Shown: positions 2,922 to 10,069 of the stretch, one piece after another
How the letters are laid out: every line of letters starts with the position of its first letter
How positions within the stretch are numbered: the first letter of the stretch is position 1
Sequence record: NC_019406.1
Length of the DNA stretch: 64,000 nucleotides
Direction: 5' to 3' (one strand)
Notes under the pieces: generated by a model
Databases searched by the model: none
Seen by the model: the letters and a program-made list of their open reading frames with translations, nothing else
What the model was told of the DNA's origin: nothing
Translations under genes and position numbers: made by a program

Positions 2922-3961
2922 TAGGCGCGAGCCTCATGAAGGGCGCGGGCCACGCGTTCGCCGATGAAGCGCACGACGGGAACCGCCAGCGAGTTGCCAA
3001 TGGCGTAAAGGCGTTGGTCGCGGGTGGCGCCGGGGATGTCGGTGTAGCCGGGCGGCATGCCCATCAACACCTCGCACTCCTCCGGCATGATCACGCGGAT
3101 GTCGTAGCGGTCGGCGCCGCGATCCTTGCAGAGCACGTAGGCCTTGGACGATCCGCCTCCGGTGGTGCGCAGGCAGTTCGAGAGGGTGTCGCCTTGTTCG
3201 ATCTGCTGGCCGCTGAAGCCCTTGATCAGTCGACCACGGATGGCGATACGGTAAGCCGGGGCTTCAGTCCCTCCGTCAGTTCCGGGGAGAGATTCCGACC
3301 AGCGCTCCGCGCGTTCGCCAGCAGCGTCGCCTTCCGCTCGTTGCTCAAATAGGATGTCTCGGGGATCGATTCCGCCACGAGGGCACGCTGCAACGAAGAG
3401 GCGCGGCCGAGATTGGGCGAGGCCGAAATGTTGAGCGTCCAGGAGTCGCCATGCAACGGACCGCTTCGGCCCAAGCACGTAACCAGCGTTCGACCACCGA
3501 GACCCTGGCGGTCCTGGCGGGACGAGGGCGTCACCAAATTCTCCGCAGAGTTGAGCGAGGAATTGTCCGAAGGCGTTGTCGTCATCAGAGAGGAGGCCCT
3601 TGACGTTTTCGAAGATGAAGACCGGCGGGTCGATCTCATCGACGATGCGCAGGCCGGCGAGGGTGAGGATGCCGCGCGAACCGTTCAGGCCCTTCTTCTT
3701 GCCGGCGTCACTGAAGTCCTGGCAGGGAAACGAAGCCCAGAGCGCGTCGATTTTTCCGCGATAGGGGTAGCCGTCGATTTGCAGGATATCGCCCAGGTTC
3801 GGAACCGTGGGGTGACGCTCCTTGAGGAAGCGCGTAGGGAACGCGGCATTATCGGCTACGAAGCGCGGTTCATCCTCGAACCCAAGGCCCTTGAAGGCTA
3901 GGGAGGGGATTTCCACGCCCGAGCAGAGCGTACCGAGTGTGAGGAGAGGGAAGGTGGTCAT
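2921..3961 (-). CDS. dcm: DNA (cytosine-5)-methyltransferase
   Basis: motif IV SFPCQDFS, motif VI FENVKG, motif VIII QSRPRLF, motif X IGNSLAVPV. Confidence 0.95.
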   Translation of the reverse strand: MTTFPLLTLGTLCSGVEIPSLAFKGLGFEDEPRFVADNAAFPTRFLKERHPTVPNLGDILQIDGYPYRGKIDALWASFPCQDFSDAGKKKGLNGSRGILTLAGLRIVDEIDPPVFIFENVKGLLSDDDNAFGQFLAQLCGEFGDALVPPGPPGSRWSNAGYVLGPKRSVAWRLLDAQHFGLAQSRPRLFVAACPRGGIDPRDILFEQRAEGDAAGERAERWSESLPGTDGGTEAPAYRIAIRGRLIKGFSGQQIEQGDTLSNCLRTTGGGSSKAYVLCKDRGADRYDIRVIMPEECEVLMGMPPGYTDIPGATRDQRLYAIGNSLAVPVVRFIGERVARALHEARA

Positions 3962-4020: not shown

Positions 4021-4800
4021 TCACTGAATCTTGCCGGGCCACACCTTGTCCGCGTAGTGAAGCAACTTCTCGACGAACGACTGCTTGGCCGATCCGGAGA
4101 CGAAGAACGTCATCCCCGTCGGCCAGCCCGAGGGCAGCCCCAGGAACTGGAGCGGTGCATCCATCATCGTGAAGTGGTGGGCGACGAAGGAAGCGATCTC
4201 GTTCCACGCCAGCGCATAGGTATGCTCACCGAACCGGCGCTGGTTGTTCTCGTCGTAGAAGCCGAGGCCCAGGCGAATCTTGTTCAGGCCCGCATCGAAG
4301 GCCATCCAAACGAAGCGGCCGTCGGTGAGGTTCGCGTCTTCGACTTCCCAATCCAGAGGATGCGGAAAGACCGCGAGCTTGACGTCGCGGAGCGCGGCGG
4401 CGAACTTCCGACGGAAGCCTTCCTGATCCAGGCGCGTGGTATCTTGAGCGACGAGGTACTGACCCACGTACAGCGGGATGTACTGATGAGTCAGCAATTG
4501 CTCGTGGAAGTTGACGTCCATCGTCGAGGAGAACGGATGGATGCGCGGACGCTTCTCGTCCACGAGTTCGAACCCGCCTCCGTTTTCGAGCCATTCGGCC
4601 AGCGGCTCGATATGGAACTCGTGGACGTTAGGGCCGGCGATGTGGGCGCGCTGAAGGCCGGTCTTGGTTTCGTTGCCGAAGCCGATCTGGATGTGATTGG
4701 CCTCGGTGAAGTGGAGAGCGTAGATGAAGGAGATGGAGACGCGAGCCGATTGGATCAGCACGCGCTCGTAGCCGTCGAGGATATCGCTCACAGGCGCCAC
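4021..4800 (-). CDS. hypothetical protein
   Basis: 259-aa ORF packed in the operon, overlapping the upstream stop; phage-like codon usage. Confidence 0.7.
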   Translation of the reverse strand: MAPVSDILDGYERVLIQSARVSISFIYALHFTEANHIQIGFGNETKTGLQRAHIAGPNVHEFHIEPLAEWLENGGGFELVDEKRPRIHPFSSTMDVNFHEQLLTHQYIPLYVGQYLVAQDTTRLDQEGFRRKFAAALRDVKLAVFPHPLDWEVEDANLTDGRFVWMAFDAGLNKIRLGLGFYDENNQRRFGEHTYALAWNEIASFVAHHFTMMDAPLQFLGLPSGWPTGMTFFVSGSAKQSFVEKLLHYADKVWPGKIQ

Positions 4801-6620
4801 TTTCCGTTGTTCATGGTGAGGATCGCACGCTTCCCGTTCTGATAGGTAATGACATGCGATTGCGACCAGGACGACAGGCCCTTGTTGTAGCCCATGTCCA
4901 GCTTAGACGAGGTGCCCGAGGTATAGATGCCGTCGTGGATTTCGCACGAGTGGGTATGTCCAGTCGTCGCCTTCGGCCCCATCTTGGTGAAGGCTCGCGG
5001 ATTGCCACGGGCGCCGTTAGCGCCCAGGTGTCCGTGCATGCCCTTCTCGATGTCCAGGACCCGGAACGACTGATCTTCGCGAAGGAACTCGACGCCGGCG
5101 CAAGGCGTCTTTTCGAAGAACGTCGTCAGGACGTGGTTGAAGATCGAGAACTTCTTGGCCTTCTCGGCGATCTCGGGATCGCTGCTCTTCTTGTCGCGGA
5201 TCGCCTTGTAGGAGGCCAGTTGGCATTCCAGGAAAAAGATCGCGTTGGGAGGGTCTTGACGGTAGTCGGCTTCCTTGAGCCAGCGCTTCAGCGCCAGATC
5301 GTGGTTCGACTCGACGATCACCGTCTGGCAGAAGTCACGCTTCGTGTTGTCGATGAAGTAGGCGACCTCACGCAGTTCTTCTTCCACCAAGTCCACACCT
5401 TCGATGAACAACTCGAACATGTGGTGGGCGTCGCGGATGTTGTGGTGGTTGCGCGACTGGAAGTCGGCGACGTCGTGGAAGAACTGGTACTTAGGGCGCA
5501 GCACGTCAATCAGAGGCGTCTCCGCCAAACGTGACTCTCGCATGTCGATCCAGACGCGCGAGCCGTTCAGACCGACTTGCTCGGTCGGCGCGATACCGAA
5601 GCAGGTCTCGCTGACAACCGGGTCGATCTGTGCGACGTGCAGGTCGCCCCAATTCACCGCTTCGATGCGGTGACCGTGAGTGACCTCCGCGACGTTCTTG
5701 TACTCCAGGTAGTCGTCCGGGAACGACATACGCTCGTAGCTGCCGTCCGCGAAGGCTTCCCAATACCGGCTAGTCGCTTCGCGCTTCTCGGCGCGGCGCT
5801 CTTCGCGCTCTTCCTCGGTCAGCGGCGCCTTGTGCATCTCAACACGGGTGTCGAGGTCGTAGAAGGAGCCGTCGGCTTCGCCCAGGAGGTGACGACAGAA
5901 GAACGTACCGTCTGCCGCGATCTCGACCAGCACCGCGCCCAGGGCGTGGTGGAACGAAGCTTCGATGCCGGCGCGCATCGGAATGTAGTTAGGCTTGGTG
6001 ACCGCGCCGGTGGTCATGATGATCTTCGCCGGCTCGTGCTTCATGGTCGGCACGGACTTCAACTGCACCTTGGCGTGGGGAATGATGCCCCAGCGGTGGC
6101 GCGTGTAGGTCTCGAAGCCTTGAAGCGGCGACTTCGCGGTCGGACGCGTGTTCATCTCGCCGCAGAAGTCGATGCCGTCGCCCAGGCGGATGCGCTCCTG
6201 GACACGGTACTGGTTGATCCAGGGATGCCAGTACGGCACCTTCTTGGGATCGTTGTTACCGAAGAGGCGCTTGCTGTAGGTGAAGCCGGCGACGATCAGT
6301 TCGCAGGGGCCGAGCGCCTGAAGGCTGTCGCGGTAGGCTTCCAGCGCCGCCAGGAACTCGTAGTGGAGTTCGGTGCTCTCCTGGGCCGACGTCAGGATGA
6401 AGCGCGCCACCGGTTCGCTGATTTGGCGGACCGTGGTCGACGGCGCTGGGCGATGGGTGAAGCCGCCCTCGGCCGCCTTCGCCAGACGCAGTTGAAGGGT
6501 AGAGCGCGGCACGCCATACTTGCGAGAGAAGGCGCGCTGCCCGCCGATCTTGTTGACCAGTTCGGCCAGCTTGTCGGGGGTGACCGAATCAAGGTCGAAG
6601 GTCGGGGACTTAGCCGGCAT
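4788..6620 (-). CDS. N-terminal HTH plus calcineurin-like metallophosphoesterase protein
   Basis: HTH-like FSRKYGVPRSTLQLRL; phosphoesterase motifs WGDLH, ESNHD, HGH, GHTHS. Confidence 0.8.
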   Translation of the reverse strand: MPAKSPTFDLDSVTPDKLAELVNKIGGQRAFSRKYGVPRSTLQLRLAKAAEGGFTHRPAPSTTVRQISEPVARFILTSAQESTELHYEFLAALEAYRDSLQALGPCELIVAGFTYSKRLFGNNDPKKVPYWHPWINQYRVQERIRLGDGIDFCGEMNTRPTAKSPLQGFETYTRHRWGIIPHAKVQLKSVPTMKHEPAKIIMTTGAVTKPNYIPMRAGIEASFHHALGAVLVEIAADGTFFCRHLLGEADGSFYDLDTRVEMHKAPLTEEEREERRAEKREATSRYWEAFADGSYERMSFPDDYLEYKNVAEVTHGHRIEAVNWGDLHVAQIDPVVSETCFGIAPTEQVGLNGSRVWIDMRESRLAETPLIDVLRPKYQFFHDVADFQSRNHHNIRDAHHMFELFIEGVDLVEEELREVAYFIDNTKRDFCQTVIVESNHDLALKRWLKEADYRQDPPNAIFFLECQLASYKAIRDKKSSDPEIAEKAKKFSIFNHVLTTFFEKTPCAGVEFLREDQSFRVLDIEKGMHGHLGANGARGNPRAFTKMGPKATTGHTHSCEIHDGIYTSGTSSKLDMGYNKGLSSWSQSHVITYQNGKRAILTMNNGKWRL

Positions 6621-7365
6621 AGAACATCTCAGCCTTGGCGTGGGGAAGCGTCTGAGCCTTCTGCCAGTCCCACACGTAGAACGCGTAGGAGAAGCGCGGG
6701 CTCGCGGACTTTTCGCCTTCCTTCTTCTCGACCCAGACCGGGCGGAAGCGCAGGGTGATCTTGGCGGCGAAGGCGGGGTGGTCGATCAGGTCGGCGCGCC
6801 CCTTGGCGGCGTCCCATTCGTGGCGCATCAGGAAGGCGACGTAGCCGTGCTGCGCTTCCATCAGTTCGAGGGCCTTGCGGACCGCGCGATCGGTATCCTT
6901 GCCGTAGGGCGGGTTGGAGATGATGCAGTCAGGCGTGAAGCCTAGCATCTCGGTGATCTCCGAGAACGGGCGCGGGCGGACCGGTGCAGGCTCGGCACCC
7001 AGCCAGACGCCGTCGTCGCCAGTGTTCTTGTCGATCAGACGCTCCCACGCAGCCAAGGCGCTGTCGAACGCCTCGCCATCCGGGTAGATGCTGAAAAAGT
7101 CGACCAGCCCATGGAGGTCCAGACCATCGTATTGGACGATGTCCGTGGCGCCGGCGGAACGGCAGTAATTCTTGATGATGTGGTAGATGGCACCGTTACC
7201 TGCGAACGGTTCCCAGAATTGCATCGCCTCCAGATCGTCCTCGACGACCGAGACGTACGCATTCGTCGCTCGGGCCGGGGTGGGATAATGATCAAGGGGA
7301 GCACGCGCGTAGTTCGTGCCGCCCAGCATGGAAGGGTCCTTACGACCCGTGTCGGTGATAGCCAT
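6610..7365 (-). CDS. DNA N6-adenine (or N4-cytosine) methyltransferase
   Basis: WEPFAGNG SAM-binding motif and IISNPPYG catalytic motif; start placed at ATG 7365. Confidence 0.85.
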   Translation of the reverse strand: MAITDTGRKDPSMLGGTNYARAPLDHYPTPARATNAYVSVVEDDLEAMQFWEPFAGNGAIYHIIKNYCRSAGATDIVQYDGLDLHGLVDFFSIYPDGEAFDSALAAWERLIDKNTGDDGVWLGAEPAPVRPRPFSEITEMLGFTPDCIISNPPYGKDTDRAVRKALELMEAQHGYVAFLMRHEWDAAKGRADLIDHPAFAAKITLRFRPVWVEKKEGEKSASPRFSYAFYVWDWQKAQTLPHAKAEMFYAG

Positions 7366-7460
7366 GCCGGGATAACTGGCATGGTTAACCGAAAGCGTCA
7401 AGAATCCTGGCATTTCTCTCCAGGCTTGACCGTTACGGCCCTTACGGATAGGGAATAATC

Positions 7461-7735
7461 AACCGAGGCGGGTCCACCACACCAACCGCGCGCCTCACGC
7501 TCTGCGCGCGAATTTGACCGTAACTCGAAGTGGCCGGACGCCTCAGGTGGAGGAGGCTAAGGCAATGGGCGAAGGACGGGTGCGGCGAGCGTATAATTGA
7601 GGCCGGCTGAAGTTAGCTGGGAATGTAGGTGTCCTGCCACCGTTCCCACGATGCGCGGAATCGACAGGTCCGTGTGACGCGAACGCCGGCCGAGAATAGA
7701 CGACAAGGCGTGACGCCCGGAGAGAGTGCCGGACT
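7461..7735 (+). ncRNA. putative structured ncRNA unit 1, ending in the conserved module at 7675-7732
   Basis: no credible ORF; TTGACC at 7426 with a -10-like TAGGGA 17 nt later; multiple hairpins; 3' module shared with units 2 and 3. Confidence 0.5.
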
Positions 7736-8209
7736 TCTTGACACGAAGAACTAGATCGTAGACACCTTGGGCCGACTAGGGGACCTGGGGTGGTGCGAAT
7801 GGGCTTCCACCTACAGTCATCTGGCAGCCTCTGGGACCCCAGGCTGTCAGGCTCAACGGTGATGAGATGCCAACGGCTGGCTGGAATGCCGATATCACCT
7901 GACGCGAACGCCGGCCGAGACGATACGACCAGGGCGTGACGGGGGCCAGAGGCCTCAATCCATTACTTGACCGGCGCCGGGAGTTCTGGCATCCAGGCTG
8001 TGATGTCTCAGGAGCCTCCGTTCCTGAGGGACCTATTCAGGCGATCGTGACCGTCTCAAGGGTGCTGTCCTGCGAGAAGATCGTGAGCCCGCGTATGAGA
8101 CGTCATTTACGCGCGGGACACCCATGGTGGAAGGGAGCCGCTATGTGGCCCACCTGACGCGAACGCCGGCCGAAAAGTACGATCAGGCGTGACGGGGGCC
8201 AGAGGCCCT
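7675..8209 (+). repeat. three near-identical copies of TGACGCGAACGCCGGCCGA(G/A)A...GGCGTGACG
   Basis: copies start at 7675, 7900 and 8155; the intervening sequences are unrelated and about 170-200 nt long. Confidence 0.95.
7768..7960 (+). ncRNA. putative structured ncRNA unit 2, module at 7900-7956
   Basis: TTGACA at 7738 upstream; hairpins GGCAGCCT/AGGCTGTC and GGTGAT/ATCACC; conserved 3' module. Confidence 0.5.
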
Positions 8210-8210
8210 A
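7997..8210 (+). ncRNA. putative structured ncRNA unit 3, module at 8155-8209
   Basis: TTGACC at 7967 upstream; hairpins CTCAGGAG/TTCCTGAG and GGTGG/CCACC; conserved 3' module immediately before tRNA-Cys. Confidence 0.5.
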
Positions 8211-8215
8211 CACCT

Positions 8216-8302
8216 GCTACGGTGGACTGAGTGGTAAGGCGTGGGACTGCAAATCCCGCTGGCGAAAGCCTATCGTGGGTTCGATTCCCACTCGTAGCTC
8301 CA
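8216..8302 (+). tRNA. tRNA-Cys(GCA) with a long variable arm
   Basis: acceptor GCTACGG/TCGTAGC, anticodon loop CTGCAAA, T-arm GTGGG-TTCGATT-CCCAC, U73, encoded CCA; extra arm GGC-GAAA-GCC; 87 nt. Confidence 0.9.
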
Positions 8303-8320
8303 AAATTCCTGACATTTTTC

Positions 8321-8360
8321 TGCCAGCCTGCTTGACAAGCCGAAAAGCGTCCGGTACACA
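8321..8360 (+). promoter_or_regulatory. sigma70-type promoter for tmRNA
   Basis: TTGACA 8332-8337, 17-nt spacer, TACACA 8355-8360. Confidence 0.65.
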
Positions 8361-8366
8361 CCTCTC

Positions 8367-8712
8367 ATCGTCGTAATACGGCATACACGATTGGCGGCAA
8401 GACAGGGGTGCGATTCCCCTCGCCTCCACCAAGACCCCACCGGCCGGTGCTTCGGCGCCGCGATCTGCCCCAGCGACAGATCGAAATCTGAACGGTGCGG
8501 TGGGGTCCTGATGGGGGCGATCAGTTTCGATTGGCGCTGTGACTGGAAGACGCGACGTAGGGTGACCTCCTGGCTTAGGCTTCGGCCGAGGTAATTGGGT
8601 CAACGCTGACAAATGTCAACGACAACGACGCTCCCGTGATGGAGCAACTGCTGGCGGCCTAACGGCCTAAAGCGGCGCCCGGCGGGGGCGTGTCAACAGA
8701 ACCCCGCCACCC
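8367..8712 (+). ncRNA. ssrA: circularly permuted (two-piece) tmRNA
   Basis: acceptor piece ends GAC-AGGGG-TGCGATT-CCCCT-CGCCTCC-A-CCA (8431); hairpin intervening segment 8432-8512; coding piece starts GGGGGCG at 8513 and gives a G3:U70 Ala acceptor stem; tag ORF 8615-8662 VNDNDAPVMEQLLAA*; CAACAGAA near the 3' end. Confidence 0.92.
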
Positions 8713-8891
8713 TGCTTCCGCAGCCGGAGGCGACGACAACTAACGGCATGATCTGTCGGCAACCGATCAACCAGTTTTCGTCTCCGGCTTCGCAAGTAGG
8801 TTTGGGGAGTAGTCCTCCGAGGGATCGGAGTATAACGCTCTCCGGGGAGGCGCCTGGGACCATCCAGCCCAGACCGTCTCCCGAATTTTAT

Positions 8892-8954
8892 GCCGGGGAT
8901 AGGGTGGTCGCTCGCCCTAAACAGTTCGGGTAAGCTCCGACTGCCCCGGCTCCA
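8892..8954 (+). ncRNA. 63-nt tRNA-like RNA with a CCA end and only two internal arms
   Basis: perfect 7-bp GCCGGGG/CCCCGGC stem, then T and CCA; internal hairpins TAGGG/CCCTA and CAG-T-TCGG/CCGA-CTG. Confidence 0.55.
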
Positions 8955-8961
8955 AGTTTGA

Positions 8962-9038
8962 TGCGGGGTGGAGCAGTCCGGTAGCTCGTTTGGCTCATAA
9001 CCAAAAGGTCGAGGGTTCAAATCCCTCCCCCGCATCCA
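8962..9038 (+). tRNA. tRNA-Met(CAT) with an fMet-like D-arm
   Basis: TGCGGGG/CCCCGCA acceptor, D-arm GAGC/GCTC, anticodon loop CTCATAA, T-arm GAGGG-TTCAAAT-CCCTC, U73, CCA; lacks the three consecutive anticodon-stem G:C pairs and the C1:A72 mismatch of initiators. Confidence 0.9.
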
Positions 9039-9039
9039 C

Positions 9040-9530
9040 AAGCTGAAGCTCCGATGGCGGTCCTAGGCCGCAGCTTTACCCGGTCCCACGTCGGACAAGG
9101 CCGGGGTCTAGGTGGTGAGATATGATCGACGCCGGCGGAGCGCCAAGCCACCTTCCGCCACCAACGCCGTGTGCGTGACAAGCCTGGAGAGAACGGGCAC
9201 TCCAATCCGGGGTATGAGGCCGGATGTAGCGAACGCCAGCGAGATCGGCGTGACTGGTGGGGGAGAGGACCCACGCTGATTTCGATGAACGCATTCGGCG
9301 ATGTCGGCTTTCTCCATGGAGCCGCCGCCTGAGGCAGGAGCTACTGCCTCCGTCATGCGTTCTGCCAAATCAGCTTCGTCGCGGGGGTTCGATTCCCCAA
9401 GTTCGCGCCTCCTAGGGCGTAGGGCTGCATGGGACACCGACGGATAAACGGGAGTTGCCGGTTCGAGTCCGGCCTGGGCGGGGACTAGGAAACCCGGCCG
9501 GTGGAGGTAACTGGAGAACCTCGTCCGACC
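9040..9530 (+). ncRNA. highly structured non-coding region with two further module copies and two orphan T-arms
   Basis: modules at 9164-9198 and 9227-9274; T-arm hairpins at 9384-9398 and 9457-9473; GAACGCAT/ATGCGTTC multi-branch stem. Confidence 0.5.
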
Positions 9531-9536
9531 TATTTT

Positions 9537-9623
9537 GGTGTGGTGGCTCGACAGGTAAGGCGCCGGCCTCATAAGCCGGAGGGCGAAAGTCCTATGTAGG
9601 TTCGAATCCTACTCACACCTCCA
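9537..9623 (+). tRNA. tRNA with CAT anticodon (Met or Ile2) and a long variable arm
   Basis: GGTGTGG/TCACACC acceptor, CCGGC-CTCATAA-GCCGG anticodon arm, AGGGC-GAAA-GTCCT extra arm, GTAGG-TTCGAAT-CCTAC T-arm, U73, CCA; 87 nt. Confidence 0.88.
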
Positions 9624-9629
9624 ACTATG

Positions 9630-9815
9630 CGACGCCCCAGCGTCCGGACGACTCCCTGGCCGGTAACCACTCCGTCACAGGGACTCCCAGCCGGGGATAG
9701 CATGCCGAGGACGGAAGGCGCACGCCGTGACTGCCGGGAGAGTACGGTATCGAGTGAAAGCCGTGAGGCAGACCCTAGTGGCTCGACGGGGGACGTGAGG
9801 TGGAAGCCCTCACAC
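9630..9815 (+). ncRNA. putative structured ncRNA with the sixth module copy
   Basis: ACGG/CCGT-GAC-TGCCG-GGAGAGTA-CGGTA at 9711-9749; terminal GTGAGG-TGGAAGC-CCTCAC hairpin. Confidence 0.45.
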
Positions 9816-9820
9816 CTTCC

Positions 9821-10069
9821 TCAATTGAACAGAAGCTGCTTGCTGTCGGGCCGGAACTGTACGCCGAGTTCGACCAGGATGCGCTTGATCGTGGCGTAGA
9901 AGTTCAACACCGCGCGGTGATCCGAGATGGATGCGCCTGTCACCAATGTGCGGGTCTTCCCCTCGTGCTGAACACGAATCTTGCAGTGCTTGTTGCGCTC
10001 GACCTCGAACGCCACATCGTGGTGCTTGAGGATGCGTTTCGCCATTTCTACGGTGTCTCGGCCAGCCAT
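9821..10069 (-). CDS. small hypothetical protein, possibly HicA-like fold
   Basis: 82 aa from ATG 10069; KHCKIRVQHEGKTRTLV resembles HicA-type alpha-beta-beta-beta-alpha proteins. Confidence 0.6.
   Translation of the reverse strand: MAGRDTVEMAKRILKHHDVAFEVERNKHCKIRVQHEGKTRTLVTGASISDHRAVLNFYATIKRILVELGVQFRPDSKQLLFN

Follow-up and report, generated by a model that had tools for sequence, protein, structure and literature searches.

What is encoded by a phage region without a recognisable protein gene, in which one short sequence recurs three times on the same strand? The question is raised by positions 7426–8210 of the 64,000-nucleotide (nt) stretch of DNA analysed here, hereafter referred to as the window, which belongs to the Caulobacter phage CcrColossus (NC_019406/JX100810, Dolichocephalovirinae; the record position equals the window position plus 124000). 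The region is bounded by the start of gp162 (a DNA methyltransferase gene, 6610–7413, minus strand) and by a tRNA-Cys gene on the plus strand. It is non-coding and consists of three cassettes, in each of which a promoter-like TTGAC box is followed by a body of ~135–220 nt, lineage-specific and unrelated to the other two, and then by one ~57-nt module on the plus strand. This module represents a phage RNA motif that is widespread and absent from Rfam 15; it is conserved, structured and strand-specific, and has its fixed place where transcription or translation units meet. A first-pass annotation made from the letters of the window had recognised this anatomy (box, variable non-coding body, constant 3′ module, three times over), and had read the module as the handle of a guide, decoy or sponge RNA family. 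The anatomy holds, whereas the role assigned to the module is not supported by its occurrences elsewhere.

Organisation of the three cassettes

The 19-mer TGACGCGAACGCCGGCCGA that opens the module is present exactly three times in the 64 kb, at 7675, 7900 and 8155, as compared with 0.15 expected occurrences, and beyond this opening 19-mer the repeat reaches ~57 nt. The modules are spaced by 225 and 255 nt. The near-identity previously described for the entire module is limited to the first 19 nt and GGCGTGAC; the internal loop varies between copies, and the last hairpin is CCGG/AGAGAGTG/CCGG in unit 1 but GGGGCC/AGA/GGCCYY in units 2 and 3. In the same way, the region can be called a tandem array with respect to the module and the TTGAC box, which recur, but the units are otherwise not tandem repeats.

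The promoter-like boxes first noticed at 7426, 7738 and 7967 (TTGAC(C/A), plus strand) are indeed present, each within a CTTGACM word (7425–7431, 7737–7743 and 7966–7972), and a fourth CTTGACM is located at 8331 (TTGAC at 8332), ahead of a tmRNA gene. The site of unit 1 (7426–7454) has TTGACC, a 17-nt spacer and TAGGGA; that of unit 2 (7738–7764), 4 nt after module 1, has TTGACA, a 15-nt spacer and TAGACA; and that of unit 3 (7967–7995), 11 nt after module 2, has TTGACC, a 17-nt spacer and CATCCA. The −35 element is perfect and the −10 sites, at spacers of 15–17 nt, are weak, such that the boxes are consensus matches only; a strict sigma-70 scan of 6500–10000 returned no promoter. Combined with a −10-like YANNNA 15–17 nt downstream, CTTGACM is found at six sites in the window, four of them within 7425–8360, where 0.53 are expected, an enrichment that is partly circular since the pattern was chosen after viewing these sites. 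Relatives in Brevundimonas phages have better −10 hexamers, AATATG and CATACA, at 17 nt.

The non-coding bodies span 7455–7675 (unit 1), 7765–7900 (unit 2) and 7996–8155 (unit 3). They are mutually unrelated, as had been claimed: the three do not align with one another, and an all-against-all blastn comparison of 30 bodies found no similarity between genera. The claim that they are rich in hairpins was not borne out, with minimum-free-energy folding no better than that of dinucleotide shuffles (z = +0.67, −0.32 and −0.75 for units 1, 2 and 3). Only the hairpin directly 5′ of the module recurs in relatives, with a differing sequence; in CcrColossus it is found at 7647–7674 (7647–7650 paired with 7671–7674), 7858–7899 (7858–7863 with 7894–7899) and 8126–8154 (8126–8130 with 8150–8154).

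A coding explanation was considered and rejected, in agreement with the earlier annotation. The open reading frames (ORFs) of the region (31–84 amino acids) gave no match in a PHROG search; relative to the orthologous region of phage CcrPW (96% identity), unit 1 shows three 1-nt indels; and the only mini-ORF led by a Shine-Dalgarno sequence (a strong one; 11 codons, unit 1) has lost its stop codon in CcrPW. A terminator scan gave no terminator-like site in 7426–8210 and no canonical terminator after the modules in 6500–10000. Nor does the region have the properties of a CRISPR-like or guide-RNA array: the bodies are unequal and unrelated, and the flanking genes yield no linked effector.

Structure of the module

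Relatives of the module were collected from GenBank phages, IMG/VR, bacterial genomes and metagenome-assembled genomes (MAGs). The 26 copies from which a covariance model, R1, was constructed came from IMG/VR contigs and MAGs; they had been fetched by sequence pattern, and none is from Dolichocephalovirinae. The scope of the R1 search is the fetched loci (denoted L with a number), and over 70 of these it returned 97 copies.

The common plan starts with a hairpin of free sequence, followed by (K)GAC-GCGAA and a stem of five base pairs (bp), Pb (A-CGYC pairing with GRCG-U), which encloses a loop of 6 to >30 nt, usually with GG at the start and YA at the end. The 3′ part consists of UGAC and one purine, a second stem, Pc, with 4–6 bp of free sequence, AC, and ~7 U-rich, G-poor nt. 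The Pc loop is GAGAGA, or GAAAGA in lower-GC phages, or CC-AGA-GG in most Dolichocephalovirinae copies.

R1 finds six copies in the window, all on the plus strand and all within the tRNA/tmRNA island at 7.6–9.8 kb; the next-best match in the window scores 10 bits. Copy 1 (7676–7734; 35.4 bits, E = 6e-10) has GCGAA at 7679–7683, Pb formed by 7683–7687 and 7707–7711, UGAC at 7711–7714, Pc formed by 7717–7720 and 7729–7732 around the loop AGAGAGUG, and AC at 7733–7734. In copy 2 (7901–7958; 26.1 bits, E = 8e-7), Pb pairs 7908–7912 with 7933–7937, UGAC occupies 7937–7940, and Pc pairs 7942–7947 with 7951–7956 around an AGA loop. The corresponding elements in copy 3 (8156–8211; 33.4 bits, E = 3e-9), which ends 4 nt before tRNA-Cys, are 8163–8167 with 8186–8190, UGAC at 8190–8193, 8195–8200 with 8204–8209 around AGA, and AC at 8210–8211. 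The remaining three copies lie outside the cassettes: one with a shortened Pb at 9157–9200 (16.9 bits, E = 8e-4), downstream of tRNA-fMet; one with a short Pb loop and the Pc loop GGAGAGGA at 9226–9276 (27.1 bits, E = 3e-7); and a weak one at 9715–9750 (17.1 bits, E = 7e-4), downstream of tRNA-Met.

In the alignment of all 97 copies, 99.0% of the pair cells are standard pairs as compared with 80.0% in column shuffles (none of 500 reach it), and both sides have changed in 133 cells as compared with 29 in the shuffles, figures that lean towards structure because the alignment was fitted to the model. Slid partners pair in 25–48% of cases. Double changes are found in all five Pc pairs and in two Pb pairs, and since G-U pairs are formed on the plus strand only, this is the functional strand. 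Most loci were fetched by patterns that fix GCGAAC, GTGAC, AGAG or a GGAGAGA loop, so that the conservation of these words is partly a product of selection, and exact-word fetching also biases the sample to high-GC phages. A candidate extra pair joins the C of GCGAA to the second loop base (C:G in 60 copies, G:C in 5, G:U in 1); all six copies with G at the GCGAA position have C or U opposite, four of the six being from related phages. This pair, as seen in the alignment, we regard as a lead only; its formation would place Pb within a pseudoknot.

The tract that follows AC is 36–45% U at positions +1 and +4 to +6 against a background of 19%, and G is depleted at +1 and at +3 to +5. A UUU run is found within 12 nt of AC in 32% of the copies as compared with 5%, and the U-rich tract is missing in low-GC examples such as phiEt88. 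With its short stems and a weak, offset U run, the module does not qualify as an intrinsic terminator.

Two other assignments were rejected from these features. A DNA-level promoter (ECF-type, GAAC...CGT) is ruled out by the spacing of 6 to >30 nt between the conserved halves together with the stem covariation. Readings of the GA/GA flanks as a K-turn, hammerhead, hepatitis delta virus (HDV)-like or sarcin-ricin-loop element do not fit the strand order, as judged by a hand check only.

When all 4227 models of Rfam 15 were run at E ≤ 1, neither the module in 7426–8210 nor that in 15 other loci gave a match, and only tRNAs, tmRNA and noise were returned; literature searches on phiCbK non-coding RNAs, the sequence words of the motif, put and theta ribozymes yielded no account of the motif. 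The Rfam result includes the ribozyme families, and bears on the proposal that the module represents a novel type of small self-cleaving ribozyme, which would free the neighbouring unit through a cut made beside itself in polycistronic RNA. A size of ~50 nt, variable stems, invariant unpaired purines and the possible pseudoknot pairing would suit such a catalyst, and hammerhead and HDV-like theta ribozymes do occur in contexts similar to those of the module, in phage intergenic regions and beside tRNAs. By inspection, however, the core does not fit the hammerhead, HDV-like, twister, pistol or hatchet topologies, and the 5′ ends of tRNAs are already made by host RNase P. Self-cleavage is considered highly improbable.

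Distribution and genomic context

The motif is present in all Dolichocephalovirinae examined. Phages phiCbK, Karma and Magneto have one cassette-type copy each, to which phiCbK adds two short copies, after tRNA-fMet and beside tRNA-Met genes. CcrPW has four cassettes and one further copy, the Brevundimonas phages have two or three copies, and eight fall within a 6-kb stretch of L062, an IMG/VR contig. Outside this group, R1 matches two copies each in Ralstonia phage GP4 and Planktothrix phage Pag-Yong1, one each in Pseudomonas phage Itty13, Rhodobacter phage RcCWillis, Rhizobium phage RHph_N2, Sinorhizobium phage phiM9, Mannheimia phage 587AP2 and Erwinia phage phiEt88, three or more in Stenotrophomonas phage BUCT708, and the Pc part only in Bacteroides phage BS-TP2. 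A search of 5,426 E. coli genomes gave one weak 38-nt match only, so that the motif does not count among the classic lambdoid elements of that species.

Outside the Caulobacter phages, the motif lies between genes and on the same strand as its neighbours, except in RcCWillis and Itty13. Among the 31 ORFs located upstream, the identifiable ones are mostly genes whose products are needed in bulk, such as major head (L183, L375, L334, L349), tail tube (L257), SSB (L340, L355, L376) and RecT/Erf genes, and the stop codon is 3–40 nt before the motif. The next start codon follows 16–33 nt after Pc. The downstream genes are varied (DNA polymerase, scaffold, replication initiator, connector-like, HNH endonuclease and small unknown proteins), and this lack of relationship rules out a gene-specific cis-regulator or riboswitch. 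The motif also adjoins tRNA genes. It lies 2–11 nt before a tRNA in the case of window module 3, and in L203, L095, L134, L366, L372, L341 and L400, with Bacteroides phage BS-TP2 among the examples; in L337 the nearest tRNA is ~95 nt after the motif. Orthologues of the window copy at 9157–9200 are found directly 3′ of tRNA-fMet in phiCbK, Rogue and BL10, starting 2 nt past the CCA.

Across relatives, copy number varies and the bodies are unrelated between genera. The idea that the bodies specify targets and the module is a handle for a protein partner draws on the combination of a variable body and a constant 3′ module, each with its promoter-like box. It also draws on the 94–96% conservation of the bodies between CcrColossus and CcrPW, which shows that they are not junk over that distance, and on a larger conserved 5′ domain with covarying helices that precedes the module in the L363–L379 contigs. 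In most phages, however, the module is alone, without a body, between protein genes or next to tRNAs; the window itself has the three extra copies outside the cassettes, and the phiCbK copy lies inside a longer RNA. Furthermore, the bodies fold at the level of shuffled sequence, one CcrPW cassette has a 197-amino-acid ORF in place of an RNA body, and no effector gene is linked across loci, the neighbours in the window being a helicase, an RNA ligase, a methylase gene and the gene for a DNA transfer protein. The occurrences alone, outside cassettes and inside a longer RNA point to a portable cis-acting or self-sufficient RNA module rather than a guide handle, and we consider a guide, decoy or sponge family very unlikely.

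The larger RNA mentioned above is a separate observation. In an IMG/VR family comprising L363, L368, L371, L372, L377, L378 and L379, the motif forms the 3′ end of a conserved RNA of ~180 nt, with blocks GCGAAAG...GAUCC and GGGAG...GAGUAGGCC within ~150 nt upstream of the motif. A long-range helix in this RNA covaries (GCCCGGY/GCCGGGC vs GAACC/GGUUC), and the RNA has no match in Rfam.

The positions of the motif also raise the possibility of a small, abundant RNA that acts in trans and titrates or modulates a conserved bacterial factor, the bodies being expression context only. Candidate targets would be a defence nuclease, an RNA-binding protein, or the ribosome via the Shine-Dalgarno-like GGAGAG loop, with multiplication in jumbo phages for dosage. 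The unpaired purines (GCGAA, UGAC, GAGAGA and AC) are strongly conserved across very different phages, and the motif is placed after the most highly expressed genes and in tRNA arrays, much as tRNA genes are. It is multicopy, with six copies in the window, eight in L062 and three R1 matches in a promoter-led 700-nt gap of BUCT708, its orientation is antisense in RcCWillis and Itty13, and one Pc loop equals a real ribosome-binding site, in that the 15 nt at 9179–9193 correspond to the leader of gp162 on the opposite strand. On the other hand, the loop types GAGAGA and CC-AGA-GG have no common GGA motif, which does not fit a CsrA-type sponge (CsrA is not known from Caulobacter), and the distance from the motif to the start codon or tRNA that follows is short and constant, which suggests a tie to the neighbouring units. 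Action in trans thus appears unlikely.

The BUCT708 gap (L399, 1421–2180) follows a helix-turn-helix (HTH) gene and has a promoter-like TTGACG-N17-TAAATT and a canonical terminator at 1854–1880. It holds ~7 GGAAAGAC sites, several of them in the loops of hairpins led by UGAC, and the three R1 matches are among these. The gap looks like a multi-hairpin non-coding RNA. In phiEt88 (L398, 1140–1910), a terminator-like hairpin, a 49-amino-acid ORF, a degenerate motif (1487–1525) and tRNA-Phe are located downstream of a Q-like antiterminator gene, a layout that, by analogy, resembles a lambdoid late-leader region.

In these two loci the motif occupies positions like those of nut, put and qut elements in temperate phages, the one after a cro-like/HTH gene and the other downstream of a Q-like gene. 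The put RNA of HK022 is a ligand of the zinc-binding domain in the RNA polymerase β′ subunit and suppresses terminators that lie downstream. It comprises ~60–70 nt in two stem-loops, with non-canonical G-A fork pairs and a 5′ strand that contacts the first stem (PMC9378689). The module is likewise built of two stems with GA/GA flanks, and GCGAA may form an extra pair with the Pb loop; if the module were a put-like RNA that binds the transcribing RNA polymerase, for processive antitermination or for attenuation after highly expressed genes, the universal nature of that host partner would explain the conservation across hosts. The likeness is one of architecture only, with no sequence similarity to put. 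Whereas put lies downstream of early promoters and once per operon, the module is multicopy, with up to eight copies in 6 kb, which is unlike known antiterminator RNAs. In CcrColossus it is found at the ends of cassettes, before new promoters and a tRNA, and not just downstream of a promoter. The terminator scan of 6500–10000 gives no target for antitermination after the modules, and the strong GC hairpin of the L379-type contigs stands 5′ of the module, which could therefore not act on it. A put-like function is quite unlikely.

Some multi-cassette phages also encode a Ro60-like protein with TROVE and vWA domains, which suggested that the cassettes could be Y RNAs or another RNA partner of this protein. 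Bacterial Y RNAs (YrlA, RF02553; PMC4201824) are modular, with one conserved protein-binding part and one variable part. As for the Y RNAs, the cassettes are non-coding RNAs in phage RNA islands and, in the Brevundimonas phages Kikimora and Kabachok, beside a TROVE/Ro60 gene, the array beginning right after it; the multi-cassette phages CcrColossus and CcrPW encode a TROVE protein as well, and the island at 9380–9545 of the window has T-arms and a weak YrlA-like match (23 bits). In contrast to Y RNAs, the units have no closing 5′/3′ stem with an end-to-end Ro-binding helix and no T-arm or other tRNA-like domain, and 7426–8210 has no match to RF02553. Most of the phages with the module, phiCbK, Karma, Magneto and Rogue among them, have no TROVE gene. 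The CcrColossus TROVE gene (record positions 107047–108456) is ~24 kb away, the gene adjoins the array only in the Brevundimonas phages, and four TROVE loci, those in CcrColossus, Xanthomonas phage Sopo, Rhizobium phage TM30 and Ralstonia phage RsoM2USA, have no module nearby. A Ro60 partnership is therefore extremely improbable.

The Ro60-like proteins themselves are encoded in the Brevundimonas phages (L009 635–2005 and L010 586–1971), CcrColossus and CcrPW, and small siphophages of Xanthomonas encode relatives with 60% identity. The TROVE gene of CcrColossus, Sopo and TM30 is preceded by 675–1190 nt of non-coding DNA, which may hold the RNA partner.

A further observation concerns annotation of the strand opposite to the module. 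In phiCbK, gp290 (L003 2592–3164) and its homologues in Karma, Magneto and Rogue are hypothetical proteins on that strand, with a PHROG family of their own. As the RNA encoded opposite to it shows covariation and its loops vary in length, this ORF is probably spurious.

Apparent gain and loss of cassettes

Of the 35 Dolichocephalovirinae copies of the module, 6 are followed by a TTGAC box at a distance of no more than 25 nt, as compared with a background of 3.8%; of the 62 copies elsewhere, none is. The cassette of promoter, body and module is thus a speciality of this group. Within it, module 3 of CcrColossus equals module 3 of CcrPW up to GGCGUGACG, and from there on module 4 of CcrPW, including the junction with tRNA-Cys (window 8155–8215 vs 3852–3911 and 4720–4781 in CcrPW, L002). 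The extra CcrPW cassette between modules 3 and 4 is the one that holds the 197-amino-acid ORF. Judged from the aligned sequences, such a chimera is the expected footprint of homologous recombination between modules that removed one cassette, or in CcrPW added one, and cassettes appear to be gained and lost in this way.

Proposed function of the module

Among the functions considered, we tentatively favour, with a confidence somewhat short of even, that the module is a portable element which acts in cis to punctuate abundant phage transcripts, as a signal for the transcript end or for processing, and that a conserved factor of the host recognises it. The compact fold would be bound by a conserved RNA-handling machine of the host, for which the simplest candidates are processing of the RNase E or RNase P type, or 3′ exonucleases that are blocked. 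The module would form, and shield, the end of the RNA upstream of it, a cut or release would occur in the U-rich tract, and the next unit, be it a ribosome-binding site, a tRNA or a promoter, would start cleanly, free of upstream structure. RNase E favours single-stranded U-rich sites, which the tract of the module resembles. In CcrColossus, the module would close three promoter-led non-coding RNAs and flank tRNA genes, and its repetition would provide a substrate for the homologous recombination that adds and removes cassettes. A punctuation element accounts for the place after bulk genes, for the short and constant distance to the next ribosome-binding site or tRNA, and for the closing of the promoter-led RNAs.

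Several observations weigh against such a function. About 20 unpaired or flanking nt are conserved in phages of alpha-, beta- and gammaproteobacteria, cyanobacteria and Bacteroides, which exceeds what a plain stabilising hairpin would demand and calls for a specific partner or a catalytic fold, although this conservation should be read with the fetching patterns and the fitted alignment described above in mind. The stems are short (5 + 4–6 bp), so that protection from exonucleases would need tertiary structure. The phiCbK RNA seems to run on for ~190 nt beyond the module to a canonical terminator, and the tRNA arrays in L366 and L134 have no upstream mRNA to protect. In RcCWillis and Itty13 the motif is antisense to both annotated neighbours, which fits better with an independent small RNA gene. 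A punctuation element does not explain this antisense placement, nor the conservation across distant hosts or the place between two tRNAs.

These points are the reason for keeping the trans-acting, put-like, guide-handle and ribozyme readings as alternatives. A further reading, which we consider possible but somewhat unlikely, is that the ~50-nt module is a new functional class of phage RNA in itself. It could be a new small ribozyme, or else a ligand of some machine common to all bacteria, for which RNA polymerase, the ribosome, an RNase and a defence nuclease are candidates. Phages of many lineages would then plant the module after their most-transcribed genes and multiply it in RNA islands, and the cassettes would be units of dosage or delivery.

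Should the module be a punctuation element, one portable RNA signal would set the ends, stability or read-through of the most abundant transcripts in many unrelated phages, with hosts that include Caulobacter, Brevundimonas, Rhizobium, Sinorhizobium, Rhodobacter, Ralstonia, Pseudomonas, Stenotrophomonas, Erwinia, Mannheimia, Planktothrix and Bacteroides. The signal is unannotated in the phage records examined, and records of the phiCbK type draw the opposite-strand hypothetical ORF over it. Its recognition would improve the annotation of phage genomes, could partly explain the differential expression of capsid, tail and SSB genes, and would supply synthetic operons with a compact part that does not depend on the host. 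Conservation to this degree suggests catalytic activity or a specific partner in the host, and the question of that partner is made testable by phiCbK, which has one cassette-type copy and a tractable host. In addition, the turnover seen between CcrColossus and CcrPW illustrates cleanly the remodelling of jumbo-phage RNA islands through repeated regulatory modules.

Relation to known RNA elements

With respect to function, the module is most like intercistronic processing and stabiliser elements, with respect to genome dynamics most like PeSL (promoter-early stem-loop) cassettes, and it resembles put loosely in shape; it is a member of none of these. Elements of this kind include the T7 RNase III sites R0.3–R18.5 and the 5′/3′ stabilisers STAB-SD and the SP82 polypurine stabiliser, and hairpins of this type stay on one cleavage product and set its stability. 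As for the module, the T7-type and STAB-SD elements occupy intercistronic positions that follow highly expressed genes and immediately precede a ribosome-binding site, and those of the STAB-SD type have a Shine-Dalgarno-like purine run such as that in the Pc loop. They are, however, either long RNase III duplexes or simple purine runs, and have no multi-part sequence that is common to unrelated phages. The module differs by its ~20 conserved nt and short stems and by flanking tRNAs as well, and cleavage is only proposed for it.

In the PeSL cassettes of T4-type phages, a repeated stem-loop and promoter surround variable, lineage-specific inserts within a plastic part of the genome, and recombination between the repeats shuffles the cassettes. 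The chimeric module 3 of CcrColossus represents the same kind of recombination footprint. PeSLs are lineage-specific and carry ORFs, whereas the module is common to unrelated phages, is supported by covariation, has conserved unpaired bases and is mostly not followed by a promoter, as in all 62 copies outside Dolichocephalovirinae. The Rfam "downstream element" motif Mu-gpT-DE, found by comparative genomics, is a structured RNA downstream of phage major head genes, a position that it shares with the module. The two are different motifs since the Rfam 15 scans of the head-gene loci (L183, and L368, L371, L372, L377 and L378) gave no match.

The surrounding RNA island

The cassettes are the first part of an island of RNA genes on the plus strand that extends over 7.4–9.8 kb. 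tRNA-Cys (GCA; 8216–8302) is directly 3′ of module 3 and is followed by a permuted, two-piece tmRNA gene of the alphaproteobacterial type at 8328–8711 (plus strand; Rfam RF04321, 83.8 bits, and RF01849, 53.5 bits) with a promoter-like site of its own, TTGACA-N17-TACACA, whose box is that at 8332. The tmRNA gene is unannotated in the GenBank/RefSeq record and was missed by ARAGORN in the window. Further downstream are tRNA-fMet (8962–9038) and tRNA-Met (9537–9623), both on the plus strand. According to the record, the neighbouring genes encode methylases and a DNA transfer protein; Pfam identifies a helicase and an RNA ligase among the flanking genes, and two further proteins have no match.

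Two inverted matches connect the island with gp162. A 22-nt inverted repeat, 82% complementary, relates 6695–6716 in the 3′ part of gp162 to 8072–8093 in the unit 3 body. At this repeat the unit 3 RNA has the same sense as the gp162 mRNA, which means that the two would not pair as antisense RNAs, and the repeat is probably due to chance. The other is a perfect 15-nt match between 7414–7428 and 9179–9193, by which the minus-strand leader of gp162 and its Shine-Dalgarno sequence (CAAGCCUGGAGAGAA, then AUG) equal the 5′ half of Pc and the loop of the module at 9157–9200. The gp162 start codon is located in the loop of a similar CCUGG/CCAGG hairpin.

Finally, tRNA-like T-arm sequences, GGGGGTTCGATTCCCC at 9380–9400 and GCCGGTTCGAGTCCGGC at 9458–9474 (plus strand), are found outside any predicted tRNA. 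The YrlA match (23.1 bits, below the gathering score of 69) covers 9433–9545 on the plus strand and spans the second T-arm. The T-arm sequences in 9380–9545 may belong to degenerate tRNAs or to tRNA-like RNAs.

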